Shown here: piece by piece, positions 23,782-32,907 of the stretch
Position numbering within the stretch: the first letter of the stretch is position 1
How the letters are laid out: each line of letters begins with the position of its first letter
Assembly: GCF_041956535.1 (NCBI RefSeq)
Contig: NW_027192195.1
Span: 35,731-99,730 of the forward strand
Reading direction: 5' to 3'
Origin: Calcarisporiella thermophila CBS 279.70
Lineage: Eukaryota; Fungi; Calcarisporiellomycota
DNA: 64,000 bases
Notes under the pieces: model-generated
Told to the model about the DNA's origin: nothing
The model's database searches: none
What the model saw: the letters and a program-made list of their open reading frames with translations, nothing else
Position numbers and translations under genes: made by a program

Positions 23782-26700
23782 ATGAGCTCCCGCATTCTAG
23801 AAGCCCGGATGCTATCCGAATCTCCAATCAACAACCCCACGCCTCCATTTCAGCACTATCCCTCTCAGCAATCCACAACTAAACGGCGCCACCGACCTCG
23901 CTCGCGCTCCCTCCCACCAAACCGCGCTGGTTATGTTGGAAAGGTGTCGTTCGATCTCCTCGATTCCTCTTTACCTCTTCTCTCCTTCACACTTCAGGCC
24001 AAGTCAAACGATTACAGGCGCACAAGATGGAGTCGAACTTTTCTAGTGACAACAGACGCACACTCTTACACCGACTACGATTACGCCTTAGGCTGGGTCC
24101 TAGAGAGGCTGGTGGACGATGGAGATGAAATCGTGGCATTACGGGTCGTATCCGTAGAATTACGCGAACTAAGTAATGACCATTTTTTGGGAACCTGACA
24201 AATTCGCTTGAAATCTAATACGCCGCATTTTTTATTTATCAGTGCTGAAGAATGATGCCGGGCTAACTCCATCGACGGGCATATTCGGCACGACTCTCAC
24301 TCCTGAGGGACTTAAGGCTCAGGTCGAGCAATCCCGCGAAGAGGCCCAGACAGTCATGGATAACATTATGGTGAAAAACAAGGAGAAGAAGGTAATGTAA
24401 CGCAATTCTGGATCTGACTAGTGTCGATGTTCCTGTGCCTGTTATTCATCAGCCTCATCTATTTGTGTTTCACTTTCCAGATAAGTATCGTTGTTGAATA
24501 TGTGGTTGGCAAGGTTCCAGACACCATTCAGAGTATGATCACCATGTATCAACCCTCGCTCCTTGTCGTAGGAACGCGGCATCGCTCGCCCATCAAAGGT
24601 CTTCTCTTAGGAGGCATATCGCGCTATTGTTTGCAACACTGCCCGATCCCGGTTGTGGTGGTGCGTCCGGAAAAGAAAAAGAAGAAGAAAAATCGTAAGC
24701 ATTCTTCGGGGACTCCAGGGCTCGCAAAACGCTTATCTGCGCTTTTACATCGATGGGCAACTCCTCCTACGCGTTATCCGAGCTCGATGGGAGACTCTCC
24801 CTACGATGCTGAGTCCGAGCCAGAATCAGAGGCAGATACACGATCTGAGATCTCTTCACGACCAAGTGAGACAGAGAGCATCATATTCGACGAGGTGTCT
24901 CTAGCATCTGAATCTACCAGTGATGCCCGCCGGTCTACCAATTCATCCGCATCCACTTCCTCATCCACCTCAACACCACCAAAGAAGCCGTGGCGCATTA
25001 CTACCTTGGTTGGATTCCGGCATCGCTCAGGTAACGAGTCAGAGCCAGAGAATGGCGGAGAACTAAGTGGCGGAGCGGGTGCTAGGGAGGCGATCTGGCC
25101 TCGACTGTGGAGATCTTCGACTCCGTTCCACTCCACCACGAGTGATTCTGATCAGGACACGCTGGATACCGATTTCGTACCAGTGGCATATCCGGAAGAC
25201 TATCCGATTGAGAATAAAGAGGTGGAAAAGGAGCAAAAAGAGTCGCAGGAGGGAAACGAGACCATAGAAGGCGAAGAGGAGAAATATGCTATTCCTGAGA
25301 AGCAGAAGGAGATGAAATTGCAACGCCTACAAGCCTTGTTTCGCTTTGGATTCCGACTACGTAAGCCTAAGCGTGCAGCTCTTGGAAATGGAAATGAGGA
25401 AAAGCAAGAGAAGAAAAGGAAGGGGGATAGAAAAATTAATTTCCAGGACGTGGAGAAGAGTGAGAATGAGGAGGGGGAGAAGGAGAAGGAGAAGCTGCAA
25501 GGAAATGGGGCGATTACTGTCATGGAGGCGGGATTGAAAGAGAACTATATGGACGAGAGTAGGGAGTCGCACATAGATGGACTCACAGAAAACAGTAGCC
25601 AAGAAGAGCCTGTTGGCGACGATGAGGAGGCAAGAACCTTGGAGGAAGTGGGAACGGAACACGTTGGGATGGAAGAGACCGGCGGCGTCAATGCAAAGTT
25701 AGACGAAGATGAGGGCCTGAAGCCTAGTGATGATGAATCCGTAGCGTCAGATGATACAATCAAAGACCACAATCACCGCTCCATCTCTGAATCATACTAT
25801 TCATCTGAGCACCCTCATCTCCCTACGGCCACGACTGATAACGACCCAAATCCTTGCGATGACTCCACGGCTAATTCCACCTCCAGCGTCGATACTGCCT
25901 CCACCATCGCGGACGAATCCTATCCGCAATCGCTTGCTAGGGTATTTAAGCGTCGTCACTCGGATCGTCTTCGCATGATAATGAAAATAGGAACTGCCGG
26001 TGACCGTGCAACTTTGCGTTCTCAGAATTCAACCGTCGAAACAAACGAAAGCCCTCCCATGCCACCTCAACCGCTTACAATCAAATGCGGATCTCACGAT
26101 AGCGGGTATGCACAGGACATTGAGTATTTACAAAATAACTGCGAGTCTCTTGGAAGAGACTGGAGCGATGGGTACGAGAGTCAATCATCGGTTGCGTCTG
26201 ACGCCACTGTCACCGAAAAGCGGCGGGGAGATGCATCGGGTTTGATGAACTTGGCTCTGCAACGCCAGCAACTCCTTGCCCAGCAACAGCGGCTTTTGCT
26301 GCAACAACAACAAGAGCAGTGGCAGCAAGCGGCGGTCACTGATGCTCCTCCGCCCCCCTCTAGCTCTGAACTTTCCACCCCTTCACTCTCCGCAACCCCA
26401 TCCTCTAACTCCAAACTATCCGACCTCCAACTCGAAAATGAAAGCTGGGATCGCGCATCCATCGCCTCTGAATCAGCTATTCGTGGACGTCGCTGGCGCA
26501 GGCAGGTTCGCTTGAAACATGAAATGGAACTAGGTGCGACTAGAGCATTGGGTGGTCTGATTCAAAGTTTAAGAAAGCCGGTTTCTTTATCGGACTCCAA
26601 GAACAAGGAGACGGCTGCCGGTGGAGATAGGGTGCACAAAAGACAGAATGGAAGGGCAGAAGAGGTTGGGTATGAAAATGTCATTGGCAGCGGAATGAGC

Positions 26701-27009
26701 GCTCGGTCAGTTTCTCTGCAGACAAAAACGTATGGTATTTCTGCCACATCCACCACCACATCAACCATCTGGAGTGGAGTTCTGGCTTATGGACGTCAAT
26801 TACGTGAATGGACTCTCGACACACGAGGCAAGAGCAAAAAAATGACGGTATTTGAGGACGACAGGGCCTCAGTTCGCTCCGATCCTACTGGGAAAAGACG
26901 AGCCAACGTGTGGCGCCGCTTGATGGACAAACGCGGGGAAGACCGGCTACCACGCGGATATGAGGAATTGGATTACTGGAAACCCTTGCCTCCAATTCCG
27001 ATTTCGTAG
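23782..27009 (+). CDS. Universal stress protein (USP) domain protein with a long disordered C-terminus (3 exons)
   Basis: KVSFD...TLQAKS.DYRRTRWSRTFLV...YALGWVLERLVDDGDEIVALRV; IVVEYVVGKV...PSLLVVGTR...LLGGISRYCLQHCPIPVVVVRP. Confidence 0.85.
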
Positions 27010-27862
27010 TACTTTTTTTGGATTATACTATATATACATGACACAGGATTTCTTTGGGACTATCTTATTTGCTTAGGGTATTCAAAAGCTATCGTACTGC
27101 TTTGCCTTTGGAAAATTTGAACTTTGATACCATTCATGATTATCTTCATTGCCATCACCCTACATATCTCAGCACATCCATTGATTAACATACGTTTTAT
27201 AATTTCTGTGTATATTTTAAACCCATTCTTAGTTTAGCCTTTTTTTTTCTTCTTGGACTTTTGTATTGTGAAATGTATGTATTGGAAACTTTCTGCGCTT
27301 TCTTCCTCTCCTCCTTCTTGCTTATTAGTTGTACTTGGAGAAATAATTAAAGCCTCATCCTCTCCATAGCAATCTCTCTACCCTTGGTTTTTCCTTGACA
27401 TCCCGATCTTGAATTCCTGGATTGGCCTGCTCAAACCGTTAGCCTCTCCTAACACTTTAAAAGGCAATCGTCCCACATTGAGGCTCAGACCTGACTTAAA
27501 TCCAGCAAATCGCCGTCAATAGTAATTATAGAAGAACCCGCCACACTATTTGTACAAACTAGCAGACCCAAGTCTTGGGCACCTTGTCTCGAATCCGGCT
27601 CACTGATTGTTCGCTTGCTTCCTCACTAGATCAGCGTAGGATTCGCACAAGTCGTGGCATCTACACATTAATGACCTCTGTTTCTAATGCTTAATGAGGA
27701 GCTGTAACGTGTTGTTTGCGGTTTAAAGGGTAATACAACCTGACCCTAACTTTTCAAACCGCCTCTCTGCGATCATCCTGGTGCTAATGCTAATCATGCG
27801 TCTTTCTAAATTCTAGACATCTCATTAGAACCAGTTTATTGTTTACCCATATATTTACAATA

Positions 27863-30315
27863 ATGCAACCTAAATTCCTACTGCGTTTCCTCTACGCATC
27901 CTTTCTTACTTTAATATTACTCGCCTCTCCTTCCACACCAGCTACAACCCCGTGCCTAATCTTCTTTAATAAATCGTTACACACCCTCGTCGGTCCTAGT
28001 GGCACCCTCAATCAGTTCCCCCTTTCCAATGGTGGAGACTTCCTTTCCTCCGTCGGCCCGAGGACTCCAATATCGATTGCTAACACGGCATGTGCACTTC
28101 TCTCCACTAACGTCACAATATGGCTTCCGTCCGATTTGAAAGGTCATATCTTCAGCGCAGAAGGAATATCCAATCCTTCTGCTCCCACCATTTCCAATAA
28201 GCCTACCGTTAGCACGCTCGTTTTACCCTCTTCTACTCTCCCGACTAGTCTTGTCCCTATAAGCTCACTGTTAACAGTAGCGCAACCTAGTAGCCTTTCA
28301 ACCCCTATTTCCATAGCGAATAGTAACAACAACAAGGATAGCCAAGCACCTCAACCAACAAAGGGTGTATTGGTGAGTGGCGAAACTGGACTTCCGGCGC
28401 GCGTTAAACGTATGTATAAAATATTGAGCTCTGCTCTGCCCCCATTTGAAAACTCAGTGCTGATAATGTAGGATTGGTGCCCGAGGATACTATCACCCTT
28501 AACACTGTTGATCTCAACCAACCAGAGCCCAAACTGTTCCCAATATCTGTGCGTCTCGATAATAGCGCTAAAGGATTGTTAAGCGAGCCACATCCACTCC
28601 CAGTTGCGGCTGTAGACAACACTCTCTTCGCCGTCAGTTCTCAGCACATCTATTCACTGGATGCAATGAGAAATCCGTTAATATTTAATGTTATGAACAT
28701 CACGGGAGAAAAAGCAGAAGTGGCCGCCGTTACAGGCACGAGCAATGGCCTATTCATCTTGCAAAAAGGCAGTGGGAATATTGGTTTCCAGCTACGACAT
28801 CTAATTCCAGGTCAAGAGCCAGTGCTGCTAAATGTGAACGGCGGCATCGCAAATACCAGCGGGAATATGCAGATGACAGGAGACGCCCAGACTCTCTACA
28901 TATTTTCCGAGAATGACAAGAGATTAACTCGAATAATTGCGGATGGAAACCTGGCCATGGCAAGCCCCTTAGATCTGCCCAATGACTTAACGGCCGAACA
29001 ACTAAACAATTTGAGGCTTGCAATGTTAGGCAATCGACCTTTACTAATAGCGGGAAACCAACTAAGGTATTACTCGCCAAGCGGTGTATGGGATGCAAGC
29101 GGTAGTCTCGTACCTGCTTCCACCCAACCCAACGCTGCCAAGACTGGCAGCCAACTGAGTCTAGGGGCAATCATTGGCATTACTGCAGGAAGTGTGGTCA
29201 TTTTATCCATGGCCACTGCTGCGCTTATTCTTCATCTAAGACGCAAGCGCACTCGTCTTCATTCACATCGGCTGGAGGAGAAAGCCTCGAGAGAAGCCGT
29301 CAATAGAGATTCGAGGTCACTCAAGGCGAGTGATGCCTTTGGTTCGCAGAAGATTGAAATGGAGACACTTCCCATCGGAGACTCCTTAAGTAAAACGAAT
29401 TCTACGTCGAATTTGGTGGATCCTGCAATCGGTATCCCATACCCGCTGGCAGATCAAACTGTGAGCTCTATGCAGGAGATGTTCACAAAACATGTGAGGG
29501 TGGGTCCGGTGCCAGAGCAGGTGCACCCAGATGCTCGGCAAAACACAGTCTTACTAAAACGATACCGCCTTGTGGATGATCCAGCGGCAAGCGCCAACAA
29601 AGTGCGTCAGGTGGAGGATACGATCACCAGCGAAGAATTTACCCTAGAATTCTTCTCCTGCTACAATGAGTTTGCGCGCCATGTAGCCATGCTCGACTAC
29701 CTTCGCGCTCCACACATCGTCAGTTTGCAAGCCGCCTACGACGCAGTCGGCACTTTTATCGCGGTTCACGAGCGTACGGGACAGGCTCTTTCGGAGCTTC
29801 TCTATGCGAACGAACCAATGGGTCTGAATCCATTCCTCAAGGGCTTTGTTAGTCGTTCGCTCATTCAAGCAATGCGTTGGGTCTGTACCAAACAGGTCGT
29901 CTATCTGACCCTCACCCCAAGCTGCCTCTCTAGCGAGCCGCATGACGAGACGGTTTGGAAACTGTGCGGGTTCGAGCAAGCCATGATCGCCAATGAACTT
30001 ATCGATGCGAGTGAGCACCTTTTGACCCCCTATTCAGCGCCTGAGCTGCTATTTGCCTCCAAAGGCGAATTAATTCAGGCCTCCTCCACCATGGATTCCT
30101 GGTCGCTAGGGTGTGTGCTCTATGAGATCTGGCTCAACCGCCCGCTATTTAAGAACATCGAGGAGGCCCGATCGGCCCTGCAACAGAGAGACTGGTTCCC
30201 TCCAGGGCTAGAATACCTAAGGGAAGAGGGGGAGGAGGGGGCGAGCATGATGAGGAACATACAATTACTCTTGAAAATCGATCCTAGAATTCGACCGAAT
30301 CCACAGGATCTCTAA
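27863..30315 (+). CDS. Single-pass receptor-like protein with a cytoplasmic pseudokinase domain (~796 aa, 2 exons)
   Basis: Signal peptide; intron 28410-28471; ectodomain; TM LGAIIGITAGSVVILSMATAALILHL followed by RRKR; kinase-fold motifs PHIVSL, WKL, YSAPELL, DSWSLGCVLYEI, LLKIDPRIRP. Confidence 0.8.
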
Positions 30316-30902: not shown

Positions 30903-32907
30903 TCAAATCTCAGAGCTATACCGTCTTGACTTTCGTTCCCTTTTGGACTTTACCTCCATAGATTTCATCTGGTTCATCTCCATCCACTTCTCCCACATCG
31001 TCCTGTCTCGCTCTTGCTTAGGCTCGGGTCCCCTGTCTTTCATCCCCTCTCCAAGTATAGCCTCTGCTTTATCTTTTTCGAGACCCGGGACCGGTTCACC
31101 CTGATCCTCTGGATATATCGTCACCCCCCCTTTGGTTAGAGCCTCTTGTTCTCGAACAATAGTCACCTCCCTCGCCTGCGTTTTCTTCTCCTCAGATGGC
31201 TCAGAAAACTTCGCCACGTCGGCTTCTTGCTTGCTCACAGGTTGCACTGGAACTTGCTTATCTGTGGACATTTTTTCTCCGTCTGCGTGGTCCCGCTCTT
31301 TGCCCTTGCCCTTCGAACTCTGCAAGCTCTCGCTCTCCTTAATTTCTTCGCATGTCTTCTCACCCTCTCCCTCCTGCATCCCACTAAGTCCCAGACCTAT
31401 AGTAGGCAATACTCCCTGCCTCCTACTCGGTCCCTCCCCGACCTCACGGCCAAGCGAGGTCATCCCCATTCCAACCCAGCCAGCGCCCTGCTCATCCATG
31501 GCATCGGCTTCTCCCCTCCACAGCGTGTTCCAAGCACCCTGAAATTTCATACGCATGTCCGTGAATTCACTGGTCAGATCGCTCGAGCCCTCAAAGTGCC
31601 CAGTCTCCGCGTAAGCATTCGTCTCTGGAAGCGCACTCGACGCATGAATACTCCTAGAGATAGTCGGTAGAACACCACTACTTTCCCCTTCCATCTCCGC
31701 CCTCAATCGCTCCAGCCGTTCTGCTCGTTTTCCAGCTTGTATTTCCAGCTGTCTTTCAGCGAATCCACGATCCATACCTATCCTGCTTGCAAACTTCAAA
31801 TTCTCCAGGTGATCGAGCGCAAGGCAGCCTAGCATTTCGTAATTGGTCCCCTCGCCGATTCTACCGCTGCGCAGATCGTGAGCTAAGGTGAGATAGCGGC
31901 GAATGGAAAAAGGACGGCCACGGAGAATCCCACGCGTAAAAAGCATTTGGGGCTGGTAGTCCGGCTTCACCTGCTCCTCGTCCAAGACTCTGGAAAAAAA
32001 GATAAAAGAGGCGCAAAACGAAACATCAGGCTACTGCTGTTCTTCCCTTTATATAACCCCTGGCCATGGACTTACTCGGAGGCCGCAAAGCGACGCAAAA
32101 AGGCCTGAATGCCCTGGATATCTGCATATGTCATCATGCACAGCTTACGCGACTTGAATCGCGGAGGCCACTGCTTTCCAACGCGACGGAAATAGAAGTC
32201 GATTGCGTCGGCAGGCGTTTCAAAATTGACAAATGCATATCCCGAATTAGCACCGGTGTCGAAATCATGACGCACATACACTGCATTTATACGGCCACAG
32301 TGCTCTTCATTGAGAAAATCAATGAAATCCATCTATATTCTCAGGGAGCAGTCAAGGATGAGTGCGATAAAAGAAAATGGATCACTATACTAGATGGCCT
32401 ACAGTCGAGAAACGGTTCGGGACATTACGAATCATAAATGTGGTACGGGAATCGTTCAACACGGCTATGAAAAAGAGACCGCCAGTTATTAGCCTATCCC
32501 CCACTCACCCCACTTAATTTGCAGAGCAAAGAGTACCAATATCCTCCCTGCTCTTGGGCTCGAATTTGTTCCACGCAGGAACACGCCTCACTTCTGGCTG
32601 CAAAAAAGCAGGGGAACGGCTTGATCCCGAAGAAATGGTGCACGAGCTGGATAAAGAGCGACGTAGCATATGGGGTGAAGAAGGGCACCGCGGTTGGATA
32701 TTTTGTTGATTGGAAAAAGAATGTAAGCGAGATCTCATTGGAATACGTGGGGATGCCTGTTGTTGATTAGGGTTGACGCGAGACTGGCGTTTGGAGAGGA
32801 TCCGCTTTATGCTCTATTTCCGTGGCAAGCGCAGGCCAGTTGGAGCATGGAATGAGAATCAGCATTAATAAAGCGCCAATTACCTTATCCTCTTTTTGTT
32901 CCGACAT
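30903..32907 (-). CDS. Mei2-like C-terminal RRM (RRM_2) RNA-binding protein (multi-exon)
   Basis: DSRTTFMIRNVPNRF|MDFIDFL...YVRHDF...NSGYAFVNF...F.SRKLCMMTYADIQG, the Mei2 RRM3 signature; the 5' exons are less certain. Confidence 0.8.

Follow-up and report, generated by a model that had tools for sequence, protein, structure and literature searches.

A 64,000-nucleotide stretch of the Calcarisporiella thermophila genome (contig NW_027192195.1, positions 35,731 to 99,730; called the window here, at its full length) carries a gene of two exons at 27863-30315 on the forward strand. C. thermophila is a thermophilic member of the Mucoromycota. The gene product is VTP21DRAFT_9110 (P0001 in our family set), a protein of 796 residues whose database name is "uncharacterized protein." We conclude that it is probably a type-I surface pseudokinase with a Kelch-propeller ectodomain, that it belongs to an all-dead clade of a fungal family combining Kelch repeats, a transmembrane (TM) helix, and a kinase domain, and that it would signal without catalysis. 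The view that receptor-kinase architectures are absent from fungi is already in print (Kiss et al. 2019, PMC6733946), and a sequence-only reading of this DNA had said the same of model fungi. That reading had proposed a catalytically dead receptor with type-I topology and possibly a beta-propeller ectodomain, and we recovered every structural element that it inferred, the propeller through structure prediction.

Gene model and domain organization

The listing of open reading frames has forward-strand frames at 27839-28471 and 28474-30315, which a single 62-nucleotide intron joins in frame. The ATG at 27863 is the first start after in-frame stops. Exon 1 (182 codons) corresponds exactly to residues 1-182 of VTP21DRAFT_9110 and exon 2 (613 codons) to residues 184-796, and the codon that the intron splits into C and GA supplies R183. 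Because both exon translations are identical to the public record, the gene bounds and the intron at 28410-28471 put forward in the sequence-only reading are correct. The GC content of the intron is 0.39, against 0.48-0.50 in the exons. An alternative donor, GTGAGT at 28373, was rejected because it breaks the frame. A word-based protein search with exon 2 returned a single match, VTP21DRAFT_9110 itself.

The C-terminal region matches the Pfam Pkinase family (PF00069) at 46.3 bits, above the cut-off of 31.7 (E value of 4.8e-12). An AlphaFold model built from an alignment of 63 family members had a predicted local distance difference test (pLDDT) score of 93.3 and a predicted template modeling (pTM) score of 0.91. 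In Foldseek the model retrieved Pho85, CDK2, CLK1, and ERK2 (E values of about 1e-15, TM-scores of 0.7-0.78), and the sequence matches of VTP21DRAFT_9110 in the PDB were CDKL5, CDK2, and mitogen-activated protein kinases (MAPKs). We called the catalytic motifs from an alignment with relatives that have the canonical residues. The beta3 Lys position is Glu575 (in FTLEFF), and the alphaC Glu position is His586. The H-x-D position reads Y-L-T (660-662), so that T662 replaces the catalytic Asp, and the catalytic-loop Lys and Asn are replaced by T664 and C667. There is no Gly-rich loop (GxGxxG) in the domain. The motif that is D-F-E in the family reads G-F-E here (682-684), with a Cys in front of it. 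Other motifs are intact, namely APE (705-707), DSWSLGC (724-730), and DPRIRP (786-791), and 63/63 family sequences keep both the APE Glu and its partner Arg without change. With the Gly-rich loop, beta3 Lys, alphaC Glu, catalytic Asp, Asn, and DFG Asp all gone, the domain falls within the usual definition of a pseudokinase. It is well folded and has very probably lost nucleotide binding. The sequence-only reading had identified FTLEFF, YLT, the missing Gly-rich loop, and the intact C-lobe motifs, and all of these were borne out. It was also right that the DFG motif is degenerate, but its reading of that motif as CGF was offset by one residue.

A 19-residue hydropathy scan gave only two hydrophobic peaks in VTP21DRAFT_9110, at residues 4-22 and 413-437, in agreement with the signal peptide and the single TM segment expected from the earlier reading. 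Cleavage would likely follow Ser24, which puts small residues (S22 and S24) at positions -3 and -1. The second peak is the strongest in the protein (mean of 2.07); the TM column is aligned in all paralogues, and the expected RRKR follows at 439-442. By hydropathy the protein thus has the attributes of a type-I single-pass protein: a signal peptide, one TM helix, a positive-inside cluster, and a kinase domain C-terminal of the TM helix. Four N-glycosylation sequons precede the TM helix (residues 36, 83, 258, and 310) and, like the mucin-like stretch described below, are marks of the secretory pathway. On the cytoplasmic side the linker contains no Pfam domain, but the paralogue alignment revealed a conserved motif, S-x-x-E-L/M-x-x-x-Y/H (514-524), about 20 residues ahead of the kinase N-lobe.

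Between the signal peptide and the TM helix, structure prediction points to a beta-propeller. An AlphaFold model of the ectodomain, made from a shallow and noisy alignment, had a mean pLDDT of 57.5; residues 187-399 were all-beta, with values of 60-88. The model has 23 strands, 5 before and 18 after a mucin-like stretch rich in Ser, Thr, and Pro; grouped four to a blade, they are consistent with six blades. Foldseek matched it to six-bladed propellers, including those of KLHL12 and KLHL20 (E values of about 1e-5). VIA-align gave Z scores of 12-14.7 over 220-237 residues (root mean square deviations of 3.5-4.2 A) against the Kelch domains of KBTBD2, KLHL7, Keap1, KLHDC2, and LZTR1. The four-strand blade pattern is also that of Keap1, the KLHL family, and KLHDC2. 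Alignments to whole Kelch domains cover model residues 4-371 and so begin in the N-domain that precedes the mucin-like stretch. Unlike the Keap1 and KLHL propellers, residues 1-415 matched no Pfam family at an E value of 0.1 or below, and hence there was no Kelch match on VTP21DRAFT_9110 itself. Together with the paralogue evidence given below, the models suggest that the ectodomain (about 390 residues) probably folds as a six-bladed Kelch-type propeller. For the blade count, the part after the mucin-like stretch has both the higher pLDDT and the Z scores, whereas the N-domain blades were modeled at <50. The possibility of a propeller, raised in the sequence-only reading, has therefore gained support from structure prediction and fold search, though not from Pfam on this protein.

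The Ser/Thr/Pro-rich stretch noted earlier lies at residues 100-183 (19% Ser, 13% Pro, and 11% Thr; 43% together) and was modeled as disordered. The N-domain before it holds the sole cysteines of the ectodomain, C31 and C77, and probably forms the first one and a half propeller blades in the model. If so, the mucin-like segment would be an 84-residue insertion that separates strand B from strand C in the second blade, a placement that the model makes partly in low-confidence regions; another difference from the Keap1 and KLHL propellers would then be that this one is apparently split. The stretch ends in Lys182-Arg183, a candidate Kex2-type dibasic site at which cleavage may occur, judging from the sequence. 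The coordinates of all features are collected in Table 1.

Table 1. Features of the VTP21DRAFT_9110 gene and its product, in window coordinates
Feature	Position	Strand	Details
Predicted signal peptide	27863..27934	+	Residues 1-24; hydropathy peak at residues 4-22
N-domain	27935..28159	+	Residues 25-99; about 5 predicted beta strands, low pLDDT
Ser/Thr/Pro-rich mucin-like stretch	28160..28409	+	Residues 100-183; ends with Lys182-Arg183
Intron	28410-28471	+	62 nucleotides, phase 1; donor GTATGT, acceptor TAG, and a branch-like CTGAT close to the 3' end
Predicted main propeller part	28483..29124	+	Residues 187-400; about 4.5 blades, from 18 predicted strands
Predicted TM helix and stop-transfer	29161..29250	+	TM residues 413-437; RRKR 439-442
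Cytoplasmic juxtamembrane linker	29251..29541	+	Residues 443-539; disordered
Pseudokinase domain	29542..30315	+	Residues 540-796 and TAA stop

Paralogues and the wider fungal family

The sequence-only reading had recommended looking for paralogues with active kinase domains. When the whole assembly was searched in six frames with VTP21DRAFT_9110, four further loci were found, on C46 (P0005), C35 at 81k (P0004), C5:913k (P0002), and C9 at 222k (P0003). The paralogues share its order of parts: the signal peptide is followed by an N-domain with Cys (PPCVV...), a long Ser/Thr-rich stretch, Kelch-like repeats, a TM helix with a basic cluster behind it, a linker that is long and disordered, and a kinase-like domain. 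In all five members of the genome (5/5) the beta3 Lys and the DFG Asp are gone, as are the catalytic Asp and the Lys and Asn of the catalytic loop, and so none of the four has an active kinase domain. The replacements vary among the five (E/V/E/R/N at the Lys site and T/N/A/S/N at the Asp site). When the genome was searched with a kinase-domain profile of the family (A4), the five members, among them the intron-split gene on C9, scored 235-274 bits, with VTP21DRAFT_9110 at 235, and the next kinases scored 131 or less. The best of these (on C22, C7, and C1) were considered as possible active paralogues and rejected, because they are ordinary cytosolic kinases with full HRD and DFG motifs and none of the family features. 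This profile search therefore found no active family member in C. thermophila. The architecture proposed in the earlier reading is supported, and the protein is no single oddity but one of five dead paralogues in a wider family.

Identity among the paralogues is 29-40% in the kinase domain and 13-19% in the ectodomain. Considered with the invariant APE Glu and Arg, this shows purifying constraint on a dead domain and fast change of the ectodomain. A jackhmmer comparison of the ectodomain with the ectodomains of 51 relatives found nothing, and BLASTP against the closest paralogue, which has a matching N-terminal layout, gave only weak matches (E values of 0.016 and 0.1) with TPCLI and a short TxDLNQ motif in common. 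Even so, P0003 and P0004 pass Pfam cut-offs (PF24681 or a Kelch motif), P0002 is slightly below them, and the N-domains of P0003 and P0004 contain weak, subthreshold Kelch stretches ahead of the mucin-like segment. These matches, clearest in P0004, support the Kelch assignment of the ectodomain.

A dibasic KR occurs at the matching boundary of P0002, P0003, and P0004, but none was seen in the P0005 record. The same three paralogues have one Cys directly before and one directly after the mucin-like stretch, followed by a basic cluster ending in KRQ(S/E)Q. From the sequences, this pair could close a protease-cleavable loop by a disulfide, and it would have been lost in VTP21DRAFT_9110. The record of P0005, the closest paralogue (586 residues; L003, which is C46:28963-33129 on the reverse strand), starts at an internal Met. 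The part of the first exon with the signal peptide (L003:3722 downward) is missing from it, as is some of the propeller exon. Therefore, this database record is probably too short.

To define the family, we ran an exhaustive profile search over 1.84 billion representatives and took 151 proteins, the best 150 and one cluster member. There were 44 proteins at an E value of 1e-30 or below, and the full-length family profile (A2) gave VTP21DRAFT_9110 a score of 735.7 bits. Of the 151 proteins, 71 contain a complete kinase domain of the family type, and 49 of those 71 have a strong hydrophobic segment 80-450 residues upstream of it. The Lys, Asp, Asn, and Asp are kept in 27/71, and 18 of these 27 also have a TM segment. 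The family signature comprises H-L-D, D-F-E (x-F-E in place of DFG), YSAPE, and MDMWSLGC (MDxWSxGC).

We looked up 30 representatives, of which 25 could be named. Dead members come from Jimgerdemannia (Endogonales), Umbelopsis, the Mucorales (Apophysomyces, Phycomyces, Halteromyces, Rhizomucor, and Fennellomyces), and the Mortierellomycotina (Mortierella, Actinomortierella, Benniella, and Modicella). Active-like members come from the Glomeromycotina (Ambispora and Paraglomus), the Mucorales (Apophysomyces and Dichotomocladium), and chytrids (Zopfochytrium, Quaeritorhiza, and Irineochytrium). Apophysomyces ossiformis has one active and one dead member, and Piptocephalis has a derived soluble form. 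The nonfungal entries were one distant green alga and one lamprey record that is probably unrelated. No Dikarya were found among these sampled representatives, which is not proof of absence. Family members are named in databases as hypothetical or "kinase-like domain-containing" or carry wrong generic kinase names. A literature search found no description of the family; many subscription papers were outside its reach, so this does not prove novelty. Early-diverging fungi have, in this family, receptor-like kinases and pseudokinases that apparently have not been described so far.

The active-like members are true homologues. P0006 (Ambispora CAG8582353.1) and P0037 (Apophysomyces KAF7729473.1) have the same domain order and signature as VTP21DRAFT_9110, with 23-29% identity in the kinase domain. 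In contrast to VTP21DRAFT_9110, their Kelch repeats pass Pfam cut-offs (127 bits in P0006 and 162 bits in P0037), and the active homologues of the Glomeromycotina, Mucorales, and chytrids keep the Lys, Asp, Lys, Asn, and Asp. Paraglomus P0011 passes the Kelch-motif cut-off only. Pfam found no match on the ectodomains of dead-clade proteins from the Mucorales, Umbelopsis, and Mortierella.

A quick IQ-TREE search with 63 kinase domains, rooted only at the midpoint, contained a branch with support of 96 in the Shimodaira-Hasegawa-like approximate likelihood ratio test (SH-aLRT). It divides 32 all-dead entries, including the five of Calcarisporiella, from 31 entries that include 24/24 of the active-like ones. 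Two Calcarisporiella subgroups were recovered, P0001 with P0005 (support of 97) and P0002-P0004 (support of 99). The simplest reading is a single ancient loss of catalysis before the orders of the Mucoromycota diverged. Because the dead state is common to a clade that spans several orders, the loss long predates the gene studied here.

Two further observations concern subgroups of the family. In the active clade, P0006:840-1092 (Ambispora) and P0014:437-675 (which groups with Paraglomus) form a C-terminal extension of about 250 residues with shared motifs and paired cysteines near its end; it matched no Pfam family. In the dead clade, P0025, P0028, P0029, P0032, P0036, and P0045 have no strong upstream TM segment, and their motif state is K-E-H-N-R-S-N-F-G. 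They look like a soluble offshoot that has kept the beta3 Lys and alphaC Glu, and databases misname them AMPK or NUAK. The named members of this subgroup, P0028 and P0036, belong to the Mortierellomycotina.

Possible function and alternative explanations

We propose that VTP21DRAFT_9110 would pass through the secretory pathway, become O- and N-glycosylated, and reside at the cell surface. On the way it might be cut by a Kex2-type protease at Lys182-Arg183, after which the N-terminal blades would remain docked to the rest of the propeller. Kelch propellers occur outside the cell in attractin, NanM, and galactose oxidase. The fast-evolving propeller would bind an extracellular ligand, and our best guess, from the usual ligands of extracellular propellers, is a carbohydrate or wall polymer. 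The dead kinase domain might then relay the signal without catalysis by serving its paralogues, or an active cytoplasmic kinase, as a docking platform or allosteric scaffold, in a manner akin to the receptor pseudokinases CORYNE and BIR2 of plants and HER3, PTK7, and RYK of animals. Because C. thermophila has no active family member, an active partner kinase would have to come from outside the family.

Several points weigh against this proposal. VTP21DRAFT_9110 is on record from a genome assembly only, and its signal peptide and TM helix are called from hydropathy. The mean pLDDT of the ectodomain is low, that of the N-domain especially so, and the protein itself has no Pfam Kelch match. With a quick tree and a midpoint root, a single ancient loss is not proven. 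Finally, VTP21DRAFT_9110 is the most degenerate of the five paralogues: its alphaC Glu and H-x-D His are missing as well, which makes relaxed selection possible.

The signal peptide and TM helix show entry into the secretory pathway only. Therefore, the protein might instead act in an internal membrane (endoplasmic reticulum, Golgi, or vacuole), as a lumenal sensor or a cargo or quality-control receptor in the manner of IRE1 or PERK, and not at the plasma membrane. To our knowledge, no transmembrane kinase other than IRE1 is generally accepted in fungi. IRE1 and PERK also combine a lumenal or extracytoplasmic domain, one TM helix, and a cytoplasmic kinase fold, and language-model look-alikes of our protein include IRE1-type clusters, although these are a lead only. 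We nevertheless consider an internal-membrane role unlikely. The sensor domain and the kinase subgroup differ, and the PDB matches are CDK/MAPK, CAMK, and TTK-like kinases, not IRE1 or PERK. Pfam found no KEN/RNase domain (PF06479) or any other family after the kinase domain, and the protein ends 5 residues past the last conserved kinase motif; for want of the RNase domain, an IRE1-like identity was rejected. The C terminus has neither a KDEL/HDEL nor a dilysine signal. Furthermore, a mucin-like stretch with a dibasic site is typical of Golgi-processed surface proteins and is known from the fungal Msb2 and Wsc-type sensors.

It is very unlikely that the gene is a decaying, functionless duplicate whose open frame happens to survive. 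Its degeneracy relative to the paralogues fits such decay, as does the loss of recognizable Kelch motifs and of the two loop-bracketing cysteines that three paralogues keep. However, the frame of 796 codons is intact and its intron is clean, the kinase domain was modeled with very high confidence, and none of the structural C-lobe motifs is missing. The branch length of 0.84 is similar to those of the paralogues (0.67-0.89), and the dead state, common to a clade of several orders, is older than this gene. An atypical active kinase with displaced catalytic residues is extremely improbable: the kinase fold is intact, and some "pseudokinases" have proved active, with WNK, CASK, and haspin using displaced catalytic residues, but here six elements are gone at once (the Gly-rich loop, beta3 Lys, alphaC Glu, catalytic Asp, Asn, and metal-binding Asp), and the different replacements in the five paralogues argue against a conserved alternative mechanism.

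A surface pseudokinase that signals without catalysis could also be part of a broader system, a possibility that we consider slightly less likely than not. Early-diverging fungi might own an independently invented receptor-kinase system, in which Kelch-propeller Ser/Thr kinases are accompanied by an ancient sister clade of receptor pseudokinases acting as co-receptors or scaffolds. Only five dead receptors with fast-evolving ectodomains would survive in Calcarisporiella, their propeller split by a Kex2-cleavable mucin-like insertion that is bracketed by cysteines in three paralogues; the mature receptor would consequently be a two-chain molecule. If true, the receptor-kinase design would have arisen independently for a third time.

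Relation to known receptors and sensors

The layout invites comparison with receptor kinases of plants and animals, and the sequence-only reading had spoken of a plant/animal-style receptor. This description fits the architecture but not the kinase domain, which does not belong to the IRAK/receptor-like kinase (RLK) or tyrosine kinase groups. When the family profile was compared with all PDB sequences, STK33, Rad53, CaMK1, calcium-dependent protein kinases (CDPKs), TTK, and CDK2 were near-equal best matches (E values of about 1e-45). The best 60 matches included no IRAK/RLK, transforming growth factor beta (TGF-beta) receptor, or tyrosine kinase, although this is a best-hit test only. PK_Tyr_Ser-Thr scored 17.7 bits, under its cut-off of 23.1. 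The kinase domain is therefore of a generic Ser/Thr type, and the receptor-kinase layout is analogous, not homologous, to that of plants and animals and arose independently.

Within these limits, the closest parallels are CORYNE, BIR2, and STRUBBELIG of plants and HER3, PTK7, RYK, and ROR of animals. Like VTP21DRAFT_9110 in our proposal, they are single-pass type-I proteins with a ligand-binding ectodomain and a folded but dead kinase domain, and they too belong to families with active members. They differ in that their ectodomains are leucine-rich repeat, immunoglobulin, or Cys-rich domains and not a Kelch propeller, in their kinase groups, and in not being fungal.

Fungal surface sensing is usually ascribed to G-protein-coupled receptors, histidine kinases, and mucin or Wsc-type sensors. 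VTP21DRAFT_9110 resembles Msb2/Hkr1, Wsc1-3, and Mid2 in its signal peptide, presumably O-glycosylated Ser/Thr-rich stretch, single TM helix, and possible processing site. Their cytoplasmic tails, however, are short and without a kinase fold, whereas the tail here contains a kinase fold of 257 residues. Pfam found neither a WSC nor an Msb2-type (HMH) head domain in VTP21DRAFT_9110. Therefore, it is not a known fungal mucin sensor, despite the Ser/Thr-rich stretch that they have in common.

A conserved family of single-pass kinases and pseudokinases with Kelch ectodomains qualifies the generalization that fungi lack receptor kinases. It is found in the Mucoromycota, which include agents of mucormycosis and arbuscular mycorrhizal fungi, and in chytrids. 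This raises the questions of which ligands the propellers bind, how a catalysis-free clade signals, and whether the family has a role in symbiosis, in host interaction, or in sensing of the wall. Some Mucorales with dead-clade members, Phycomyces and Rhizomucor among them, may be better suited to genetic work.

Neither neighbor of the gene in the window shows any link to it; these are a long low-complexity protein at 24421-27009 (forward strand) and another gene at 30903-31985 (reverse strand). At the P0004 locus, a Sho1-like gene with TM segments and a C-terminal SH3 domain (Pfam SH3_1, 4.9e-10) lies about 670 bp downstream in convergent, tail-to-tail orientation (L004:3045-3665, reverse strand; C35 at about 83011-83631). 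This adjacency may be due to chance and is a lead only.

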